Source: Epithemia pelagica
Taxonomy: Eukaryota; Protista; Bacillariophyta
Length of the DNA stretch: 64,000 nucleotides
NCBI GenBank assembly: GCA_946965045.2
Contig: OX337241.1
Coordinates: 2,666,001 to 2,730,000, forward strand
Direction of reading: 5' to 3'
The notes under the pieces: generated by a model
What the model was told of the DNA's origin: nothing
Databases searched by the model: none
What the model saw: only the letters and a program-made list of their open reading frames with translations
Part shown: piece after piece, positions 6,823 through 64,000 of the stretch
Position numbering within the stretch: the stretch's first letter is position 1
Layout of the letters: every line of letters starts with the position of its first letter
Made by a program: the position numbers and the translations under genes

Positions 6823-7246
6823 CTAGTGCCTTCTTTCTGGGTGTGCCCATTACGGGCGAAAACGTACCATTGGGCACATAGTTTCAACTAGATATAACTC
6901 AACCAATATTAGACCTACGGCACCATGTAGATGCTCAAACTTTTTCCTTAACATATCCTCTGTCACCATTGAATACTCCATGACACCCATCTATGACATA
7001 TCTAGGTCATATGAGGACCTCCTTTGTGCTCAATTTTAGGCATGTGGGCACACTTGGAATCCAATGTGATATGTCATAGATGGGTGTCATGGAGTATCCA
7101 ATGGTGACAGAGGATGTGTTAAGGAAAAAGTTTGAGCATCTACGTGTTGCCGGAGGCCCAATATTGGTTGAGTTCTATCTAGTTGAACTATGTGCCCAAT
7201 GGTACATTTTCGCCCGTAATGGGCACACCCAGATAGAAGGCACTAG
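6823..7246. mobile_element. Foldback / MITE-like element with ~180-bp inverted arms
   Basis: Arm 6823..7002 is the reverse complement of 7068..7246, with about 11 differences counted by eye and a 65-bp spacer. Both ends lie in CTAG (possible TA duplication). No ORF. Confidence 0.85.
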
Positions 7247-7288
7247 CTAGTAGATAGATGAGGTTACAACCATGTCACTGCTTTGTCC

Positions 7289-7620
7289 TCCTCGTTTCAT
7301 GGCCGTTGGCCAAACGCAAAGACTTATCGTACAAAAGTTAGGTTCGCATCGTTTCACGTTTATCACCTCCCCTCCTTGATCAATGGTGTAATATCTTGTT
7401 GTTGTGGTACGTTCGGCCAGGATGGATTCTCGTTCCTCCTCGTTTCATGGCCACTCATTATTTCGTGGACAAAACACAAAGACGAATCATGCATAGTTCG
7501 CATCGTCCTTTGACATTTCTGTTGTACCTCCCCTCCTTCGTCATAATGATGATGATGATGATTATGGGATCCCTCATCCCTCGTTGTGGTTTGTACGGTC
7601 AGGATGGATTCTCGTTTGCA
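7289..7620. repeat. Short degenerate direct repeats
   Basis: ctcctcgtttcatggcc at ~7289 and ~7436; caggatggattctcgtt at ~7408 and ~7599. Confidence 0.6.
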
Positions 7621-8244
7621 ACCATTGGGGTGATGATTCGGATTGGTGCTCAATGGACGAAGCATTGTGCGGGGACTCATTTTTTTGCTTCGGTTGGTGG
7701 TGGAGCGATGATGATGGCACACCCACACCGTTCGCGCCGTCGTCACCCCTTCCGCGACTAAAAGGGTTCCGGATGCACCTGCGACTGAGTTCGGCGACAA
7801 CTCAGATCTCCAGAGAACTCCATTTTTAAATTTACAGTCAAAGTTTGAGGAGTGATCAGGATGGGAAATGTGTACAAACCCGAATCTTGTGTGTCTTTCG
7901 TCCATCCTCCCACCGCTGGTGACATGGACGGTGCGAGGATCGGTCGTCACCCACACTACAACCCATTGGTTGCACTAAATAAGTTTTCTTACTGGTCTAT
8001 GATTCATGTTGAGCTCAACCCGATGGATTGTAACTAGGAGTCGCACCTACTCCATGCCGACGGAAGCCCATTCTCTCGCGTTGCATCGTGATGACGGACA
8101 ACGTGGCAAACTGGGAAGGAGCGCTGCGTCACATTTTCGGGTTTCGAGACTTTCCTTGCATTCTGTTGCCACAATTGTTGCTGGTGGTGGAATCGGTCGT
8201 ATCCATCTACTCAACCGTATTAGTACTACCTACTTGTCGATATC

Positions 8245-9537
8245 ATGGGAAAGGGAGGAAATCAAGCCGTCCGCGTGAGAGCTGCCCCATCCAAAGGAGG
8301 AGAGGATTCATCGTCCGTGTGGACGTCTCCGTACAATCCCTTGGCCAAGGATGCGCCGGAATTGCCCACCAAGGGTCAAATCAAGGCGTCCATTCCGAAA
8401 GAATGCTTTGAACGAAGTTATGGTTGGTCCATGTTTTACACGGCTCGTGATTTGTTGACATCGGCCGCCTTTGCCTACGCCACCAGCTTGGTCTTGTCCA
8501 CGGATGTGCCGTCCGTATCGGAACCCTTAGAGTGGGTCAAGTTTGTTGTGGGCTGGAGTTTCTATGCCTTTTGGCAAGGTACCATTTGGACGGGACCGTG
8601 GGTCTTGGCACACGAATGCGGCCATGGTGCTTTTTCGCCCTCGCAAACCTTTAATGACTGCTTTGGCTTTGTCATGCACCAAGCCTTGTTGGTCCCCTAC
8701 TTTGCCTGGCAATACACACATGCCAAGCACCATCGTCGTACCAATCACTTGATGGACGGCGAATCGCATGTGCCACCCACCAAGGAAGACAATGGCTTGT
8801 CGGAAACCTTGGAACGCAACTCCTTTTATGCCGCCTGGCACGAAGCCATGGGCGATGGCGCCTTTGCCGCCTTTCAAATTTGGTCTCACTTGTTCTTGGG
8901 ATGGCCCTTGTACTTGTGTGGATTGGCCTCGACGGGCCGTCTCAAGAATGATGGCAGTCCCCGTGGCGATGCCATTATGGACCATTTCCGTCCCAGTTCG
9001 GCCATGTTTCCCGACAAAATGTCCACCAAGGTTTGGGTCTCCACCCTGGGAGTTTTGGCCACCTTGGCCGGTTTGGGCTACTTGCAATACGAATACGGCT
9101 TTGTGCCCGTCTTGTGTTGGTATTGGGGTCCCTATTGTTTCACCAATGCCTGGTTGGTCTTGTACACGTGGTTGCAACACACGGACCCGTCCATTCCCCA
9201 TTACGGCGAAGGCGAATGGACCTGGGTCAAGGGGGCGTTGTCCACCATTGATCGCGATTATGGCATTTTTGATTACTTTCATCACCGGATTGGATCGACG
9301 CATGTCGTCCATCACTTGTTTCATGAAATGCCCTGGTACAATGCTCTCAAGGCAACCCATGCCGTCAAGGCTTATTTGGAACCCAAGGGATTGTACAATT
9401 ACGACCCTACATTCTGGCCCATTGCGATGTGGAGAATTGCCAAGACGTGCCATTATGTCGAGGGGACGGACGGCATTCAATATTTCAAGAGTTTGGAAGA
9501 CGTGCCCCTGACCAAGGATCGCAAAAAGCAAGAGTAG
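8245..9537 (+). CDS. FAD2: Microsomal delta-12 (omega-6) fatty acid desaturase, intronless
   Basis: Three His boxes (HECGH, HAKHH, HVVHH). N-terminus MGKGG...VWTSPYNPLAKDAPELPTKGQIKA closely resembles Phaeodactylum FAD2. Confidence 0.95.
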   Translation: MGKGGNQAVRVRAAPSKGGEDSSSVWTSPYNPLAKDAPELPTKGQIKASIPKECFERSYGWSMFYTARDLLTSAAFAYATSLVLSTDVPSVSEPLEWVKFVVGWSFYAFWQGTIWTGPWVLAHECGHGAFSPSQTFNDCFGFVMHQALLVPYFAWQYTHAKHHRRTNHLMDGESHVPPTKEDNGLSETLERNSFYAAWHEAMGDGAFAAFQIWSHLFLGWPLYLCGLASTGRLKNDGSPRGDAIMDHFRPSSAMFPDKMSTKVWVSTLGVLATLAGLGYLQYEYGFVPVLCWYWGPYCFTNAWLVLYTWLQHTDPSIPHYGEGEWTWVKGALSTIDRDYGIFDYFHHRIGSTHVVHHLFHEMPWYNALKATHAVKAYLEPKGLYNYDPTFWPIAMWRIAKTCHYVEGTDGIQYFKSLEDVPLTKDRKKQE

Positions 9538-40422: not shown

Positions 40423-41394
40423 TCATTTTCGTGTCCTTTCGTAACGGGGGGCATATTCTTTGTCGGTCGCTGCCCACATACAATTCAGTTGATTGGGCAG
40501 ATTCTCTTTCGGTTGCAATTCCCCAAACTCAACATCACTGAAATTGGGAAATGGAACAATTATTCCCCTTTCTTCGTTTTCCCCTTCTTTTCCAATTTTC
40601 TTTGTTCCCCTAAAGAGTCCAATGACAAGCACTTGATTATCTTTCAACCATGTTCTGTTTTCCATGAACATGACAGTACCGCTGTAGTCTTTCTCTGTGG
40701 ATTCGGTAACAAAATAGTAGTTACCATCTTTTCCAATGACAACGTTTTGCCCTTGAACGAGTCCACTTTGAGAATGTCCCGCTGTGGAATTTGGAAGACT
40801 GAGATTGACCGTCCCTTGGTTGCTATCGCGCCAATCAATGGCATCTTCCTTGTTTAACCCCGTTGGATTATCACCGTCCAGGTCGATTTCGAAAGCGACA
40901 AAGTCTCATGTTGCTCAACGAGTTGGCTTTGTGTTTGCGGGGGGATATCCCATGCAAAAACTTGAGTTTTTGCGGGGGATATCCCACGCAAAAACAAAGC
41001 AAACTTGTTGAGCAACATCCAAAATTTCCTTCGGCACTTGAACAAACACAGAATTGTCGGCTTCCGCTTCGTCAAACCAGTGTCGCAGTACACAGTGTGC
41101 ACAGCTCACGAGATAGTAGCTATAGTCCCTGTCTTCACTCGAGCGGTGCTTCACCAGTGAAAACGTCCACCGACCTCCCTTTCTCACAATCGGGGCAACG
41201 ATGTCATCGCTATTTGAGCGGAAATGAAAAACATCCAAGACAACGATGTGGCCACCGTGTCGAGGATACCTCTCACTTCCGCTCGAACAGCGATGACATC
41301 GTCTTGAGTTGCATCCTGTTTGGTGGCCACGTTGGCAATTGTTTCTGGCATTGAATCCTGTATAGTACTTCCAACCTGAAGACGATGAATTCAC
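40423..41394 (-). pseudogene. Family A copy A1: frameshifted trypsin-like protease pseudogene
   Basis: GGRWTFSLVKHRSS..LVSCAHCV and EKDYSGTVMF lie in different frames. An internal ~30-bp duplication (tttgcgggggatatccca x2, ~40935-40990) breaks the frame. Confidence 0.85.
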
Positions 41395-41635
41395 AACTCC
41401 GCATCGATTCGAAATATCTTACTCTTAACATGAATCTAATCGCCTGGGAATCGTAGGTGCAGCAACAAGCCTTCAAAATTCTCTCCAAGGTCGCCTGAAC
41501 TAGCGATTCGCCCGCTTCAATATCTTGCAGCGACAAAGCCACTGATATACCCTGCCACGTCCAGTCACTTTATTGGTATTATTGTCAGCATCACACATTC
41601 CCTGAACGCTGGTTATGGTCATTGCACCGTCACCG

Positions 41636-42862
41636 TCATAGGCACTCATACCCGGGCTTCTTGTGCAAGGTAGCAACCATATTTTGGTGGAAAGATCTTG
41701 ACGCGAACGTCGCTTGGCGAACTAGGATCTTGAGATTGGAATTAGTACTTGAGTAGTAGTAGTCGTGGTCATTCTCCTTTTCATTGTTGTTTGTGCTTTC
41801 TTCATTTTCAGCTTGTGGCCTTTTGTAAAGGTGGGCTCGTTCTGCGTCGGTCGCTGCCCACGTACAACTCAGTTGATTGGGCAGATCCGCTTCCGGTTGC
41901 AAATCCCCAAACACAACATCACTGAAATTGGGAAATGAAACAATAACACCTCTTTCCTCATATGCTCCGGAACTTCCAATGGTTTTCGTGCCCTTGAAAA
42001 CTCCAATGACAGACACCGCAATGCTTTGCGTCCCTGTCATGTGTGTCAAAAACATGACTGTACCGCTGTTGCCTCTTTCTCCGGATTCAACAACAAAATA
42101 GTCGTAACCATCGTCTCCATGGACAACGTTTTGCCCTTGAACGGGCGCACTGTGAGAATGTCCTGCAGTGGTATTCGGAAAAGGAAGATTGACGGTCCCT
42201 TCGTTACTAGGCCAATCGAGAGCATCTTCCTTGTTTAACCCCGTTCGATTGTCACTGTCCAGGTTGACTTCGAATGCCACAAAGTCTCGCAGTTTGTTAT
42301 CCCCCGCAAACACAAAGCCAACCTGTCGAGCAACATTCACAATTTGCTCCGGCACCTGCAGAAACAACGAATTGGCAGTGTTGTCGGCTTGCGCTTCCTC
42401 AAACCAATGCCTCAGTACGCAGTGGGCACAGCTCACTACAAAGTACCTATAGTCGTTGTCTTCACTCGAGCGGTGCTTCACCAGCGAAAAGGTCCACCGA
42501 CCCCCCTGTATCACAGGCGCGGCAAAGTCCTCTCGGGGCGGGGATAGAACAAAATTGCCCTCCGGGATGGCAGCAGCAGGAGTGGCCACCAAAAGGCGGT
42601 CCAGTTTATCGGTGATGGTGGTCACATCTTTTTTCGTGGCCATTTCCTCTCGAATTTTGGCAATCTCTTCTTTGGTGGCCATTTCCTCTCGGATCTTGTC
42701 AATGTCTTCTTTGGTGGCCATTCTTGCGGTAATTTCTTGTATTTTCAACAAGATTTGATGATAGGAATCATTCGTTTGGGACTGTGAGGAAGCGACGGTA
42801 GTGGGTGGGGTGTCTTCATGCGTCATGGGTACATTACCCTGGTCATTCTCTTTATCGTCCAT
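41636..42862 (-). CDS. Family A copy A2 (intact, 408 aa): MATKED coiled-coil repeats plus a chymotrypsin-fold serine protease-like domain
   Basis: 13-aa repeats MATKEDIDKIREE / MATKEEIAKIREE / MATKKDVTTITDK. Putative triad motifs VSCAHCV (His), LRDFVAF (Asp) and ERGNSGTVMF (Ser). No signal peptide. Confidence 0.8.
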   Translation of the reverse strand: MDDKENDQGNVPMTHEDTPPTTVASSQSQTNDSYHQILLKIQEITARMATKEDIDKIREEMATKEEIAKIREEMATKKDVTTITDKLDRLLVATPAAAIPEGNFVLSPPREDFAAPVIQGGRWTFSLVKHRSSEDNDYRYFVVSCAHCVLRHWFEEAQADNTANSLFLQVPEQIVNVARQVGFVFAGDNKLRDFVAFEVNLDSDNRTGLNKEDALDWPSNEGTVNLPFPNTTAGHSHSAPVQGQNVVHGDDGYDYFVVESGERGNSGTVMFLTHMTGTQSIAVSVIGVFKGTKTIGSSGAYEERGVIVSFPNFSDVVFGDLQPEADLPNQLSCTWAATDAERAHLYKRPQAENEESTNNNEKENDHDYYYSSTNSNLKILVRQATFASRSFHQNMVATLHKKPGYECL

Positions 42863-44347: not shown

Positions 44348-45181
44348 CTAAAAGTTGTCGATGAGGGCTTTTTCTTTCTTTTTCTTTCTGTTCTTTTTCT
44401 CTATCTTCTTTTTCTCTTTGTTCTTTTTCTTACGCTCTTCATTTAGTTTTTGGGAATATTCAGCAAGCCACGAACGAATGCTTGTTGCCGAATAGCGGTC
44501 ATATTCATCGTGTACCTTTTTGGGAGCCTTCTGGTTGCACGACAAGTAAATCTGCGTCCATTCTCCCGATGGAATTTTGCCCTCTGACACAGGATGGCTA
44601 AACACAGAATGGCCAAAAGTGTACATACCCAACGCGTAGGGTTTGTTGGTGTCAGACTCCTCGTAGTACGCCACAAGGAGGCACTTTCCGGAATTGACCT
44701 TGCGCGTGTACACTGCAGCGCAATTCTTCAAAGCAATTCCCGCGGCTGCGATTGCATGGGATGTTCGCAGAACCCTGCACTTGCCGGAGTCAGAAAGCTG
44801 AAGCAAATAATCATACCTGACTAATGCTTTATGCTTCAGCTGCGCCTGAATAGCCCGATCTCGAATGTAGTTAACCAGCTGACGGACATTCAGACTCTCC
44901 CAATCTTCTGGCCAAGCTTCGTTGTACTCTAGTTCATCAATGGAACCAAGGTACGAACCTAGTTCATCGATGGAACCAAGGTTTTCTGACCATTCGGTGT
45001 AGTACTTGATGAGGTGCTGACGCGGAGGGCTGTCCTTTGGGGACTGCAGGATTCTCTCAATGTGATGCCACTCGTTGGTGTTGGCGGTGGGGAAATATGC
45101 TTGCCTTTGCAGCGAGCTTGGGAGAGGAAACCAATACCGACTTTCACCAAAGCTGTCTGGATAGACTCCTCGATTGATGTC
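44348..45181 (-). pseudogene. Family B copy B1, 3' half (PcfJ-like domain, Lys-rich tail), separated from its 5' half by LTR element 1
   Basis: INRGVYPDSFGESRYWFP...LKNCAAVYTRKVNSGKC is collinear with 62394..63100. Confidence 0.9.
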
Positions 45182-45890
45182 TGGCAGAATTCTCACCAAC
45201 AACTAGGTTGTGGTGGAATCTACAACTCATCGACTGATGCTAGTATTTTATGGCATCCGATGACATTTTCGTAAAAGTGAGAAAAGAATGACGGCATGCT
45301 CGCAGACCTTTTAATTTCGGCCAAGGCATGCTCGCAATGCACGCGTTATGAGCGACCGATCGGATATTAATTATGGCCCAACACGTGCGCGCCCATTATT
45401 CTCAAGCGCGCGCAATCAATATCCGAGTACGCACCTCCACGACTTAGCCCAACGGCCTAAGTAACCGAAGCACGAATCACGATCACGCGAGACCATATCT
45501 CTATTCCCACAAATCAAAGAATGCAAACAGCAACGCGCCAAGGAAACTACCTATATCATGACAAAGCAAGAGCTGTTGGCATTGGTATATGATATACAAG
45601 TGCATATACTTCCAATACACAATATCCATGTCTACTCCAACCATACCAGTCCTGTCAGCGCCATGAATATATCAGTCATGCACCCTGACCAGACCTGCAC
45701 ACCCACACACACACCGTAGTCCTAAAGCTCACAATCATTAACATTACCATATCATCACGTCTTCAGTGTCCTGACTATCCCTACGATAGAACCCTTGGGT
45801 TTCCTTTGTTCTCTGACCCGTGGAGAACCTTGGTATCAGTTGGTAATCGATTGTGGCTCTTCTAGAGCGTGTATTGATGAATCTCTACTA
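45182..45890 (+). repeat. 5' LTR of element 1 (TGGCAG...CTACTA)
   Basis: Near-identical to 50628..51336; two substitutions noticed by eye. Confidence 0.95.
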
Positions 45891-50720: not shown

Positions 50721-51336
50721 AAGTGAGAAAAGAATGACGGCATGCTCGCAGACCTTTTAATTTCGGCCAAGGCATGCTCGCAATGCACGCGTTATGAGCG
50801 ACCGATCGGATATTAATTATGGCCCAACACGTGCGCGCCCATTATTCTCAAGCGCGCGCAATCAATATCCGAGTACGCACCTCCACGACTTAGCCCAACG
50901 GCCTAAGTAACCGAAGCACGAATCACGATCACGCGAGACCACATCTCTATTCCCACAAATCAAAGAATGCAAACAGCAACGCGCCAAGGAAACTACCTAT
51001 ATCATGACAAAGCAAGAGCTGTTGGCATTGGTATATGATATACAAGTGCATATACTTCCAATACACAATATCCATGTCTACTCCAACCATACCAGTCCTG
51101 TCAGCGCCATGAATATATCAGTCATGCACCCTGACCAGACCTGCACACCCACACACACACCGTAGTCCTAAAGCTCACAATCATTAACATTACCATATCA
51201 TCACGTCTTCAGTGTCCTGACTATCCCTACGATAGAACCCTTGGGTTTCCTTTGTTCTCTGACCTGTGGAGAACCTTGGTATCAGTTGGTAATCGATTGT
51301 GGCTCTTCTAGAGCGTGTATTGATGAATCTCTACTA
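50628..51336 (+). repeat. 3' LTR of element 1
   Basis: 709 bp, follows the PPT and is followed by the ATGTC TSD. Confidence 0.95.
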
Positions 51337-51980
51337 ATGTCGCGGCGAATAATATCGAGGCGTTCATAAACAAGTTCTAGATCTTGGTCAATAACATCAT
51401 CGAACACAAATTCTAGATCTTGGTCAATAACATCATCGAACGACTCGTGCGCAAGTTCTAGATCTTGGTCAAGAACATCATCGAACGACTCGTGCGCCTT
51501 GGCGCCAATCTCTTCCGAAATTCTCATCAAATCCATTTTCCGGTTTGCTACCCAGTTGCGGTAGGTTTCCTCGATGTCGAAAGAACCGAGGCCACTGATG
51601 AAGAGGTCCCTGCCTCGACTGTATTGCCGCCATTCTTTCAGATGGCGAGAACGGATATTGCTGATTTGCATTTCCAAGCACACCCGAGGAATGCCACATA
51701 TCTTCTCCAACGTACTGAGAACTTGTTGGTCCTCCTTGCCCAACAGATGATGGTCAGGCACGATTGTCTGGTAAAGATCCGGGGAACTCCAAGGTGCTTG
51801 ATCGTTTTCGATGGTATCATCCAGTAGTAAAGTCCGGGGCGACAGTTTGCTCGACGCCGGTGAAGTCTGCGACTGCGACGCAGCTGAGCTACTGGACAGT
51901 TGCCTCAACAATGCGGATACCCTTGTCGCCCGAAAGGAGAGCCCTCCACAGGAAGATCGATGCCAAATAAAGGCAGCCAT
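51337..51980 (-). pseudogene. Family B copy B1, 5' half
   Basis: MAAFIWHRSS...EETYRNWVANRK...LDIIRRD is collinear with 63100..63800. The SAP-like segment is truncated and followed by FDDV(L/I)DQDLE x3. Confidence 0.9.
51371..51490. repeat. Three in-frame tandem copies of ttctagatcttggtcaa(t/g)aacatcatcgaac
   Basis: Seen directly in the sequence; absent from copy B2. Confidence 0.9.
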
Positions 51981-61006: not shown

Positions 61007-61117
61007 TAAAGTTTGCCCAGTAAAGTTTGCCCAGAAAGTGTCTTTTGGAAGAAGCAAGAAGTGGTTTGCGATCCAAGTCTGTCGTTCCCGTGCCACAAAA
61101 ATCATTCGAACGTAGCC

Positions 61118-62276
61118 ATGTCGAATGAAGAGGCCCCAGCCGATGCCGTCGCTTCCACACTTTCAGACATGAATGAGGCGCTCCGTACTCTTACGACGAA
61201 AATACAAGACGATTTTGCCACTATTCGAGCCACAATGGCGACCAAAGACGATTTTGCCTCTATTCGAGCCACAATGGCGACCAAAGACGATTTTGCCAAT
61301 ATGCAAGACACATTGGCCACTAAAGGAGATGTCACCACCATAACCGAGAAACTGGACCGCCTTTTGCTGGCCACTCCTGCTGCTGCCATCCCGGGGGGTG
61401 GTTTTGTTTATCCCCGCCCTTTGCCCCGGTTGCGAAAGAGGGAGGTCGGGGGACGTTTTGAAACACCGCTCGAGTGAAGACAGCCAATATAGCTACCATG
61501 TAGTGACCTGTGCACACTGTCTACTGCGACACTGGTTTCACGAAAGGCAAGCCGACGACACTGCCAATTCTGTGTTTGTTCAAATGCCGAAGCAAATTGT
61601 GGATGTTGCTCGACAAGTTGGTTTTGTTTTTGGGGAAGATGACAAACTGCGAGACTTTGTGGCATTCGAAGTCAACCTTGACGGTGTAAATCCACTGGGG
61701 TTAAACAAGGAAGATGCCCTTGATTGGCCCGATAGCAACCAAGGGACTGTCAATCTCAGTCTTCCAAGTTCCACAGCGGGACATTCTAAAAGTGGACCCG
61801 TTCAAGGGCAAAACGTTGTCCATGGAGAAGATGGGAACTTCTATTTTTCTGCCGAAACCAGAGAGAAAGGCAACGGCGGTACTGTCATGCTTTTGACAAA
61901 CATGGCAGTGATAGAAAAGAATCAAGTGTCTGTCATTGGACTCTTCAAGGGGACGAAAGCCACTAGAACTTCCGGAGCATATGAAGAAAGAGGTGTTATT
62001 GTTCCATTTCCCAATTTCAGTGATGTTGTGTTTGGGGATTTGCAACCGAAAGCGAAGTTGCCCAATCAACTGAGCTGTACGTGGGCAGCGACCGACGCAG
62101 AACGAGCCCACCTTAACAAAAGACCAGAAGCTGAAAATGAAGAAAGCACAAACGACAATGAAAAGGAGAATGACCACGACCACTACAACTCGAGCCTAGT
62201 TCGCCAAGCGACGTTCGCGTCAAGAACCTTCCACCAAAATATGGTTGCTACCATGCACATGACCCCCGGGTATTAG
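61118..62276 (+). pseudogene. Family A copy A3: frameshifted, with the putative catalytic Ser replaced by Gly
   Basis: MATKDDFASIRAT repeats are in the first frame and VTCAHCL / LRDFVAF in a second. Indels at ~61405-61460 total about -17 nt versus A2; REKGNGG replaces ERGNSG. Confidence 0.85.
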
Positions 62277-62393: not shown

Positions 62394-63800
62394 TTATTGA
62401 TTCTCGTCTTTCAGTGTTTGGGAATATTCAGCAAGCCACGAACGAATGATTGCCGTATAGCGGTCATATTCATCGTGTACCTTTTTGGGAGCCTTCTGGT
62501 TACACGACAAGTAAATCTGCGTCCATTTTCCAGATGGAATTTTGCCGTTTATCATGTTCAAGGGTTGGTCAAAAGTGTACATACCCAGCGCGTAGGGTTT
62601 GTCGGTGTCAGACTCCTCGTAGTACGCCACAAGGAGGCACTTTCCGGAATTGACTTTGTCCGCGTACATTGCAGCGCAATTCTTCAAAGCAATTCCCATG
62701 GCTGCGATTGCATGGGATGTTCGCAGAACCCTGCACTTGCCGGAGTCAGAAAGCTGAAGCAAATGATCATACCTGACTAATGCTTTATGGTTCAGCTGCG
62801 CTTGAATAGCCCGATCCCGAATGTAGTTAACCAGCTGACGGACATTCAGACTCTCCCAGTGTTCCGGCCAAGCTTCGTTGTACTCTAGTTCATCAATGGA
62901 ACCAAGGTTTTTTAACCATTCGGTGTAGTACTTGATGAGGTGCTGACGCGGAGGGCTGTCCTCTGGGGACTGCAGGATTCTCTCAATTTGTTTCCACTCG
63001 TGGGTATTGGCGGTGGGGAAATATGCTTGTATTCGCAGAGAGGTTGGGTGAGGAAACCAGTATGGACTTTCACCTTTCGTGCCAGCACAGATTCCTCGAT
63101 TGATGTCGCGGCGAATAATATCGAGGCAATCACAACCACGTTCCCGATCTTGGTCCAGAAGAGACTGTTTTAGCCCTGTGGTTCTGGCTATTCTTTCCAA
63201 AAGTCGAGCCGGTGCATCGAACGACTCGTGCACCAAGAGGCGATGAATTAGATCTCCTTTTTTCATGCCTGAAGCCTTGGCACCAATCTCTTTCGAAATT
63301 TTCTTCAAATTTACAGCAGTTATGTAGAAGTCGACCATGCTAAACCAAAAATCCGCTTTCCGGCTTGCTACCCAGTTGCGATAGGTTTCCTCAATGTCGA
63401 AAGAGCCGAGGCCACTGATGAAGAGGTCCTCGCCTCGACTGTATTGCCGCCACTCTTTCAGATGGCAAGACTGGATATTACTTATTTGCATTTCCAAGCA
63501 TACCCGAGGAATGCCACATATCTTCTCCAGCGTGCTGAGCACTTGTTGGTCCTCCTTGTCCACCAGATGATGGACGGGCACAATTGCCTGGTAAAGATCC
63601 GGGGAACTCCAAGGTGGCAGAGCGTGCTCGATGGCATCATCCAGTAGTAAAGTCCGGGGCGACAGTTTGCTCGACGCCGGTGAAGTCTGCGACTGCGACG
63701 CAGCTGAGCTACTAGACAGTGGCCTTAATAATGCGGATACCCTTGTCGCCCGAAAGGAGAGCCCTGCACACGAAGATCGATGCCAAACAAAGGCAGCCAT
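62394..63800 (-). CDS. Family B copy B2 (intact): probable mitochondrial presequence, SAP-like motif and PcfJ-like C-terminal domain
   Basis: MAAFVWHRSSCAGLSFRATRVSALLRPLSSSS has no acidic residue in the first ~53 aa. SAP-like TAVNLKKISKEIGAKASGMKKGDLIHRLL. PcfJ-like AMGIALKNCAAMYADKVNSGKCLLV...WTQIYLSCNQ. The upstream ATG at 63935 is in frame here but not in B1. Confidence 0.8.
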   Translation of the reverse strand: MAAFVWHRSSCAGLSFRATRVSALLRPLSSSSAASQSQTSPASSKLSPRTLLLDDAIEHALPPWSSPDLYQAIVPVHHLVDKEDQQVLSTLEKICGIPRVCLEMQISNIQSCHLKEWRQYSRGEDLFISGLGSFDIEETYRNWVASRKADFWFSMVDFYITAVNLKKISKEIGAKASGMKKGDLIHRLLVHESFDAPARLLERIARTTGLKQSLLDQDRERGCDCLDIIRRDINRGICAGTKGESPYWFPHPTSLRIQAYFPTANTHEWKQIERILQSPEDSPPRQHLIKYYTEWLKNLGSIDELEYNEAWPEHWESLNVRQLVNYIRDRAIQAQLNHKALVRYDHLLQLSDSGKCRVLRTSHAIAAMGIALKNCAAMYADKVNSGKCLLVAYYEESDTDKPYALGMYTFDQPLNMINGKIPSGKWTQIYLSCNQKAPKKVHDEYDRYTAIIRSWLAEYSQTLKDENQ

Positions 63801-64000
63801 GGCTTTCCATTTATCCGGCAAGATGACTTTGGTCTGCAAGATTACTCGAAAACCTGAAAAAGACACGGTTACTTCAAAACCTGAGATGTGCCCCGCATAA
63901 AAATTGTGCGCGCAGGCTGGGTATTGAGGCGGCATGGCGTGTTAGCGATACACCCCATCATCCACTCATCGACCAAAATGTACTCACTTTTTGTAGCTTC

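Follow-up and report, generated by a model that had tools for sequence, protein, structure and literature searches.

A full-length nuclear PcfJ-like gene in the diatom Epithemia pelagica, with a SAP-like insertion and a presequence-like N-terminus

Introduction

Why does a diatom carry in its nucleus a relative of the pcfJ genes of plasmids and phages, and where in the cell would the product of such a gene work? The question is raised by a locus in a 64,000-nucleotide stretch of Epithemia pelagica DNA (contig OX337241.1 of assembly GCA_946965045.2), which is called the window below. Genes for PcfJ-like proteins are often found on phages, conjugative plasmids and integrative elements.

An earlier note on this DNA described a C-terminal PcfJ domain fused to a SAP-like motif behind a mitochondrial-type presequence, and called the mitochondrial import of a mobile-element-derived protein unusual. 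That word is too strong, given that phage-derived proteins working in mitochondria are well known, among them the T7-like RNA polymerase and the helicase-primase Twinkle. It holds in a narrower sense: the literature searched contains no description of a mitochondrial PcfJ-like protein, nor of an algal PcfJ-like family. Like the genes for these two proteins, the diatom gene is a phage/plasmid-type nuclear gene with an organelle-type presequence. It differs from them in belonging to an unrelated family, in that its import is only predicted, and in its distribution, which as far as seen is restricted to algae with red-type plastids.

The gene and its start

The locus is a single open frame on the minus strand.

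62394..63800, minus strand: complete PcfJ-like gene of 468 codons and a stop, with no intron and with its ATG in the context GCCATGG

The frame proposed earlier is present as described. It runs from ATG 63800 through 468 uninterrupted codons (62397-63800) to a stop at 62394-62396. The G+C content of the gene matches that of the rest of the window (about 49%), and its product is 100% identical to that of L003 13409-14812 (ENA assembly ERZ21939226).

Upstream of ATG 63800 the frame stays open as far as another ATG on the minus strand, at 63935. When the upstream translations of the copies in loci L001-L003 are compared, a common frame is found only from MAAFVW or MATFVW onward. Before this point, frame-shifting indels and a duplicated LQTKVILPD piece set the paralogues apart. 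Because of these frame-shifting differences ATG 63935 is rejected as the start, 63800 is taken as the conserved one, and the stretch 5' of it behaves as an untranslated leader.

Homology to PcfJ-like proteins

Searched alone, the window protein gives a sub-threshold result. Residues 346-404 match positions 57-116 of the Pfam profile PcfJ (PF14284) with E 0.006 and 16.8 bits, under the gathering cutoff of 25 bits. The protein also matches PHROG 16315 (E 9.9e-5), and phrog_16315 is matched as well by the PcfJ protein of the Enterococcus faecalis plasmid pCF10 and by P0084, one of the relatives described below. A PDB search by sequence found nothing. NCBIfam and PADLOC had no match either, which leaves no tie to any known defence system. 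Searching phage genomes by tblastn with the C-terminal half of the protein, or with P0084, returned nothing meaningful.

Relatives were found with profiles. A word-index protein search with the single protein finds just four paralogues or alleles, all from the same assembly, and with the family alignment it finds paralogues from that assembly and one algal relative already known, P0068. An exhaustive profile search finds 124 cluster representatives at E <= 1e-3, of which 54 reach E <= 1e-10. Most are algal nuclear proteins from diatoms, a pelagophyte and dinoflagellates. A sub-group of about 400-residue relatives sits on compact contigs with overlapping genes and is of bacterial/phage type. 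Pfam PcfJ is matched at E <= 0.01 by 27 of the 56 family members scanned (best E 1.3e-7).

The bacterial/phage-type sub-group provides the bridge to known PcfJ proteins. Its member P0084 clears the Pfam cutoff with 32 bits (pCF10 PcfJ scores 148.9 bits), and in the language-model comparison P0084 neighbours PcfJ clusters from Bacteria and from Uroviricota (0.96). A profile of 32 algal members (A6) was aligned by hhalign with a profile of 13 bacterial/phage-type members, P0084 included (A5). The alignment has a probability of 100%, E 1e-43 and 261 columns, and it spans model residues 24-395 of the 409-residue query. The alignment of a 129-sequence profile (A3) with pCF10 PcfJ (E 7.7e-5) brings the signature motifs into register. 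Among the language-model neighbours of the window protein itself, 59 of 60 fall in PcfJ sets.

These results bear on what the earlier note had proposed. The C-terminal strings that it quoted are present and align motif for motif with pCF10 PcfJ, including the N/H-C-A/V..Y and Q..G.CN motifs. A scan with PF14284 had been suggested as a check, and here the protein's own score falls short while the profile-profile homology to Pfam-passing proteins is strong. The PcfJ reading is thus borne out by the family-level profile match, by the chain through a Pfam-passing member and by structural matches to phage and bacterial PcfJ-like proteins, given below. The description as a C-terminal PcfJ domain joined to other parts does not hold, for the homology to complete bacterial and phage PcfJ-like proteins begins near residue 80 and runs on to the C-terminus. 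Homology of the window protein to PcfJ-like proteins, over nearly the whole mature protein, is therefore established.

A score of 16.8 bits against a cutoff of 25 could also come from a chance resemblance of motifs. This reading is refuted by the alignment of A6 with A5, and also by fold searches in the ESM Atlas and BFVD. With a profile-profile E of 1e-43 and with structural and language-model neighbours that are almost all PcfJ, its probability is negligible.

Predicted structure and conserved core

The regions shared with bacterial and phage-type relatives are as follows.

63396..63452, minus strand: conserved block 1, residues 117-135 (W....RG.DLF..GLG.FD), column conservation 0.6-0.94, common to the bacterial/phage-type PcfJ-like consensus and aligned by hhalign
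62865..63074, minus strand: conserved block 2, residues 243-312 (W...P..L...GYF ... P.R.HL.R....W ... DEL ... WP)
62397..62783, minus strand: PcfJ-like domain proper, residues 340-468, beta-alpha-alpha-beta-beta-beta and a long helix

An AlphaFold2 (AF2) model of residues 60-468 made with the 129-sequence alignment is confident (pLDDT 85.1, pTM 0.80). The same method with five close paralogues alone gives a useless model, at pLDDT 37. When the confident model is searched against the ESM Atlas, all six rows are PcfJ-like clusters, either bacterial or from Uroviricota (tailed phages), and the alignments cover 179-265 residues at TM 0.36-0.49. The global TM is below 0.5, and the domain arrangement may differ. 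In BFVD there are ten matches at E <= 0.001. The named ones are phage entries called "PcfJ like protein", with 250-450 aligned columns, and the top matches have probability 1.00. PcfJ-like proteins thus come first in both predicted-structure libraries; a structure search of this kind had been suggested in the earlier note. Foldseek finds no match to the model in the PDB at E <= 0.001, and no solved structure of a PcfJ-like protein was found there by either sequence or Foldseek.

The almost invariant residues of the family are W117, R360, N374, C375, Y379, W426 and N434. In the PcfJ-like domain, N374, C375, A376, Y379, Q428 and N434 are present, at positions with conservation of 0.6-0.99 across 106-118 sequences. 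In the AF2 secondary structure, N374-C375 lie in the loop that joins the first helix to the second, and N434 follows directly on the last strand. In GNAT folds, positions of this kind are on the substrate side. The Asn-Cys...Tyr...Asn cluster of the model could plausibly be an enzymatic or ligand-binding site.

The domain has a GNAT-like half fold, and a GNAT acetyltransferase was considered and rejected. Such an enzyme is recognised by a complete fold with the acetyl-CoA motif Q/R-x-x-G-x-G/A and the elements beta5-alpha4-beta6. Here the modelled fold stops behind alpha3, beta4 is followed by N-Q-K-A-P-K-K, and no GNAT family of Pfam matches.

Comparison with plasmid and phage PcfJ

The window protein shares with PcfJ-like proteins of pCF10 and tailed phages the order of the conserved blocks (W..RG.DLF.G.G.FD, then GY...DEL, then L.NCA..Y...LV...ALG...W.Q...N), the same predicted fold over about 250 residues, and a similar core length. 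There are also several differences. The algal gene is nuclear, identity is about 25%, and the Pfam score of its product remains below the cutoff. The N-terminal 135 or so residues of the bacterial proteins are replaced in the algal protein by a targeting-like extension. Finally, the algal proteins alone have a helical, SAP-like insertion, about 95 residues long, that separates block 1 from block 2.

On pCF10 (L006 15874-17984), downstream of the relaxase, pcfJ has an AcrIIA9-family gene and a DpnD/PcfM gene as neighbours. In Streptococcus phage Javan450 (L009 1942-7299), a 42%-identical homologue lies in the early region, after DnaD and RecT and before the portal gene. The ESM Atlas clusters include PcfJ fused to HIRAN, a domain that binds DNA 3' ends. 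The HIRAN fusions and the position behind DnaD and RecT count in favour of a link to DNA. The few papers found that mention PcfJ give no function for it. As a side observation, pCF10 pcfJ overlaps the end of the neighbouring gene, which is annotated as a Cas9 inhibitor of the AcrIIA9 family.

The algal insertion and its SAP-like motif

Two nested features distinguish the middle of the algal protein.

63072..63362, minus strand: helical insertion, residues about 147-243, the sole large gap in the hhalign alignment of A6 with A5, pLDDT 51-80
63225..63314, minus strand: SAP/HeH-like helix, extended loop and helix, residues 163-192

Because a single large gap between the algal and the bacterial/phage-type alignments covers residues from about 147 to 243, the insertion is peculiar to the algal clade. 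It is also the fastest-evolving part of the protein among paralogues (dN/dS 0.84 for residues 151-215).

The earlier note had placed a SAP-like motif in mid-protein. A helix/extended loop/helix arrangement appears to be there, both in the sequence and in the AF2 model, which places helices at 165-171 and 181-191 with a Gly/Lys-rich loop between them. Its assignment to SAP stays below threshold. Pfam SAP (PF02037) does not match the window protein, and the excised segment matches Rho_N with E 0.045-0.061 (13.7-14.2 bits against a cutoff of 24.9). One homologue matches Pfam SAP with E 0.0086. For the segment profile, the best PDB sequence match is the SAP motif of Ku70, with a score that sums two copies of one segment in the record, each insignificant alone. 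Many algal members show a similar pattern, in which the loop measures about 10-40 residues. Compared with known SAP or helix-extended-helix motifs (the Ku70 C-terminus, the FAN1 SAP domain, Rho_N), the window protein falls below every curated profile and the family varies in loop length. Several weak lines agree, and the case for a SAP nature of the insert is suggestive.

A second module of a similar kind occurs elsewhere in the family. P0039 has a DUF4332/helix-hairpin-helix module between block 2 and the PcfJ domain, a different place from that of the SAP-like insert. That modules of DNA-binding type were gained separately lends support to a putative DNA-related role of the family. Modules of other kinds are found too: P0056 has gained a Mind-bomb SH3 domain, and the dinoflagellate protein P0123 carries C-terminal ankyrin repeats.

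Spread among algae

The named members of the eukaryotic family come from the diatoms Stauroneis constricta and Cyclophora tenuis (MMETSP transcripts), the pelagophyte Aureoumbra lagunensis (UniProt A0A7S3K480), and the dinoflagellates Prorocentrum and Polarella. Since MMETSP entries are transcripts, the family is transcribed in other species. The contigs of two relatives carry eukaryotic neighbour genes such as TPT, EMG1 and CRAL_TRIO.

For these named members, the family is a nuclear gene family of diatoms, a pelagophyte and dinoflagellates. The window gene is nuclear and intronless and codes for a full-length homologue of PcfJ-like proteins known from conjugative plasmids and tailed phages. 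The family is spread, as far as seen, across algae with red-type plastids, and it is unannotated in the sources and papers searched. A domain tree made by a quick method (118 columns, 109 rows, fragments excluded) lacks the resolution needed to tell whether the algal clade arose once.

The N-terminus and predicted targeting

The part of the protein that replaces the bacterial N-terminus is as follows.

63642..63800, minus strand: acid-free presequence-like extension, residues 1-53, with V-S-A-L-L followed by R-P-L/S-S, an R-3-type site (the slash marks the cleavage-like position)

The absence of acidic residues noted earlier is real: residues 1-53 contain 14 Ser, 8 Ala, 8 Leu and 5 Arg and no Asp or Glu. 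The cleavage-like motif R26-P-L/S is also present, but it is not strictly conserved as had been thought. The Copia-split paralogue and the L001 copies, described below, have RQLSS, and the conserved pattern is R-x-L-S-S.

A crude rule was applied across the family. An N-terminus is called mTP-like if its first 30 residues hold at most one acidic and at least three basic residues, and if the first acidic residue lies beyond position 15. By this rule the window protein is mTP-like, and so are 19 of the 41 algal members that have a Met start and an extension. The rule picks none of the 12 bacterial/phage-type members, and among internal windows of the same proteins it picks 2.9%. On the complete Stauroneis and Cyclophora transcripts, too, the encoded N-termini are mTP-like.

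Other members carry signals of another type. The crude rule flagged four as signal-peptide/transmembrane-like (P0037, P0047, P0070 and P0112). By eye, a signal peptide with an ASAFAP-type motif is seen in P0047 (CLA/FAP), P0041 (AAA/FVP), P0070 (ALS/FVV) and P0034 (AAA/YLP). An ASAFAP-type motif after a signal peptide is the mark of diatom plastid import. The two sets overlap only in part, as P0034 is mTP-like by the rule and P0041, which has no Met start, is outside the table. P0022, which is mTP-like, and P0041, which is plastid-like, are sisters in the tree. Given such unlike signals on sister proteins, members of the family seem to have changed their target organelle.

By composition alone, the family looks organelle-directed and its window member looks mitochondrial, and a mitochondrial presequence on the window protein is plausible. 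The close tree relatives P0047, P0070 and P0041, with their signal peptides and ASAFAP-like motifs, might instead suggest that the product goes to the plastid. Plastid import in diatoms requires a hydrophobic signal peptide, however, and the window protein has none (maximum 12-residue hydrophobicity 0.9), which makes a plastid destination very improbable.

The same PcfJ-like protein could also work outside organelles. The Ser/Arg-rich N-terminus would then be a disordered linker and the protein a nuclear or cytosolic one, for instance a SAP-type chromatin-associated factor. SAP motifs are typical of nuclear proteins, the N-terminus of the window protein has only a moderate hydrophobic moment (0.93), and 18 of the 41 algal members fall outside the mTP-like rule. 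Several of these other cases resemble miscalled starts, however. Family-wide, acid-free basic N-terminal extensions are about 16-fold enriched over internal windows, and the plastid-type signal peptides on sister members point to organelles as the workplace of the family. A non-organellar role is therefore unlikely.

A possible role in organelle DNA maintenance

A joint explanation can be offered for the gene and its product. The algal proteins have lost the N-terminal 135 or so residues of their bacterial relatives and have, in their place, an organelle-targeting-like extension. Between blocks 1 and 2 they have gained the helical insertion, some 95 residues long, which is plainly present and putatively SAP-like. 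The product would most likely be imported into the mitochondrion, with removal there of at least the first 28 residues, up to the R-x-L motif. Through its SAP-like insert, the mature protein would probably attach to organelle DNA. There the PcfJ core, with its Asn-Cys...Tyr...Asn cluster, would act in DNA maintenance, that is, in replication, recombination or repair.

DNA-related work in an organelle is something that we infer. With modest confidence we lean towards the whole combination of a full-length nuclear PcfJ homologue with a SAP-like insert, mitochondrial import and a part in organelle DNA maintenance. A wider scenario is conceivable but rather doubtful. In it, algae with red-type plastids domesticated a phage or plasmid PcfJ gene, added a SAP-like DNA-binding insert and diversified its targeting, so that paralogues serve mitochondrial and plastid nucleoids.

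Consequences for organelle biology. If the wider scenario is true, the algal proteins would form a class of factors for organelle genome maintenance that had not been recognised before. For algal biology the family adds one more candidate to the few organelle nucleoid proteins of phage or plasmid origin.

Consequences for PcfJ. In that scenario the family would offer a first experimental handle on the role of the widespread phage and plasmid PcfJ-like proteins. A conserved eukaryotic branch with organelle-type signals and independently acquired DNA-binding-type inserts (SAP-like in one case, helix-hairpin-helix in another) points to work on DNA. Transformable diatoms are tractable hosts for such a family.

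Rebuilding after transfer. The gene is also an example of a scaffold rebuilt after its transfer, with the N-terminal domain swapped for a presequence and an insertion gained.

Copies in the genome

The gene is not alone. By tblastn, at least seven copies are found in the assembly, the intact window copy among them. Two further copies and a neighbouring gene are placed as follows.

44444-45190 (residues 229-463, 79% identical) and 51330-51980 (residues 1-235, 70% identical), minus strand: paralogue split by Copia
L003 10193-11580, just beyond the end of the window: frameshifted copy in two frames, residues 1-311 and 313-468
61013-62276, plus strand: convergent neighbour gene with MATKDDF-type repeats and a weak Trypsin_2 match (E 0.076)

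About 6.1 kb of Copia sequence separates the halves of the split paralogue. An acidic DQDLE-type repeat stands in this copy where the second SAP-like helix would be. The copy at L003 10193-11580 is either a frameshifted pseudogene or an assembly error. L001 holds two intact copies, 73% identical to the window copy, and L002 holds one 97% copy and one 5'-truncated copy (7201-8307) next to an RVT_2 gene.

Copies of the trypsin-like gene adjoin most PcfJ-like copies, as at L002, L003 and window positions 40435-42520. Their orientation varies: the two genes are convergent at the window copy and on the same strand beside the Copia-split copy. Since their copies mostly adjoin, the PcfJ-like and protease-like genes were probably amplified as a unit. 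Constraint on the copies is relaxed, and several of them are broken.

Compared with an L001 copy, the window copy has a dN/dS of 0.60 overall. By region, residues 53-150 stand at 0.31, the PcfJ domain at 0.64, the insert at 0.84 and the presequence at 0.87. Synonymous divergence is patchy between paralogues. For instance, dS between the window and L003 copies is 0.016 for residues 216-345 and 0.26 for residues 53-150. This unevenness suggests gene conversion among tandem copies.

The family is thus expanded in Epithemia pelagica, partly decaying and under relaxed constraint, and the window copy may be dispensable. A stronger version of this reading makes the window copy one of a recently amplified, decaying set without present function, in which a domesticated gene is drifting to pseudogenes in a Copia-rich region. 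The seven or more copies, the losses by Copia splitting, frameshift and 5' truncation beside RVT_2, and the overall dN/dS with its still higher values in insert and presequence would all fit. So would a search for RNA runs containing this stretch, which found none; the four runs compared are DNA-type contigs. Against it, the 468-codon frame is intact in the window copy and in at least three others, the N-terminal core is still constrained (dN/dS 0.14-0.31), and the almost invariant residues W117, N374, C375, Y379, A404 and N434 are kept. A copy without function is accordingly quite unlikely.

A small variation is also seen at window position 63191, where some public contigs are without 3 bases. 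The indel is in frame, lies within the fast-evolving insert, and corresponds to the one-residue difference (ERIARTT and EIARTT) from the 97% copy P0001.
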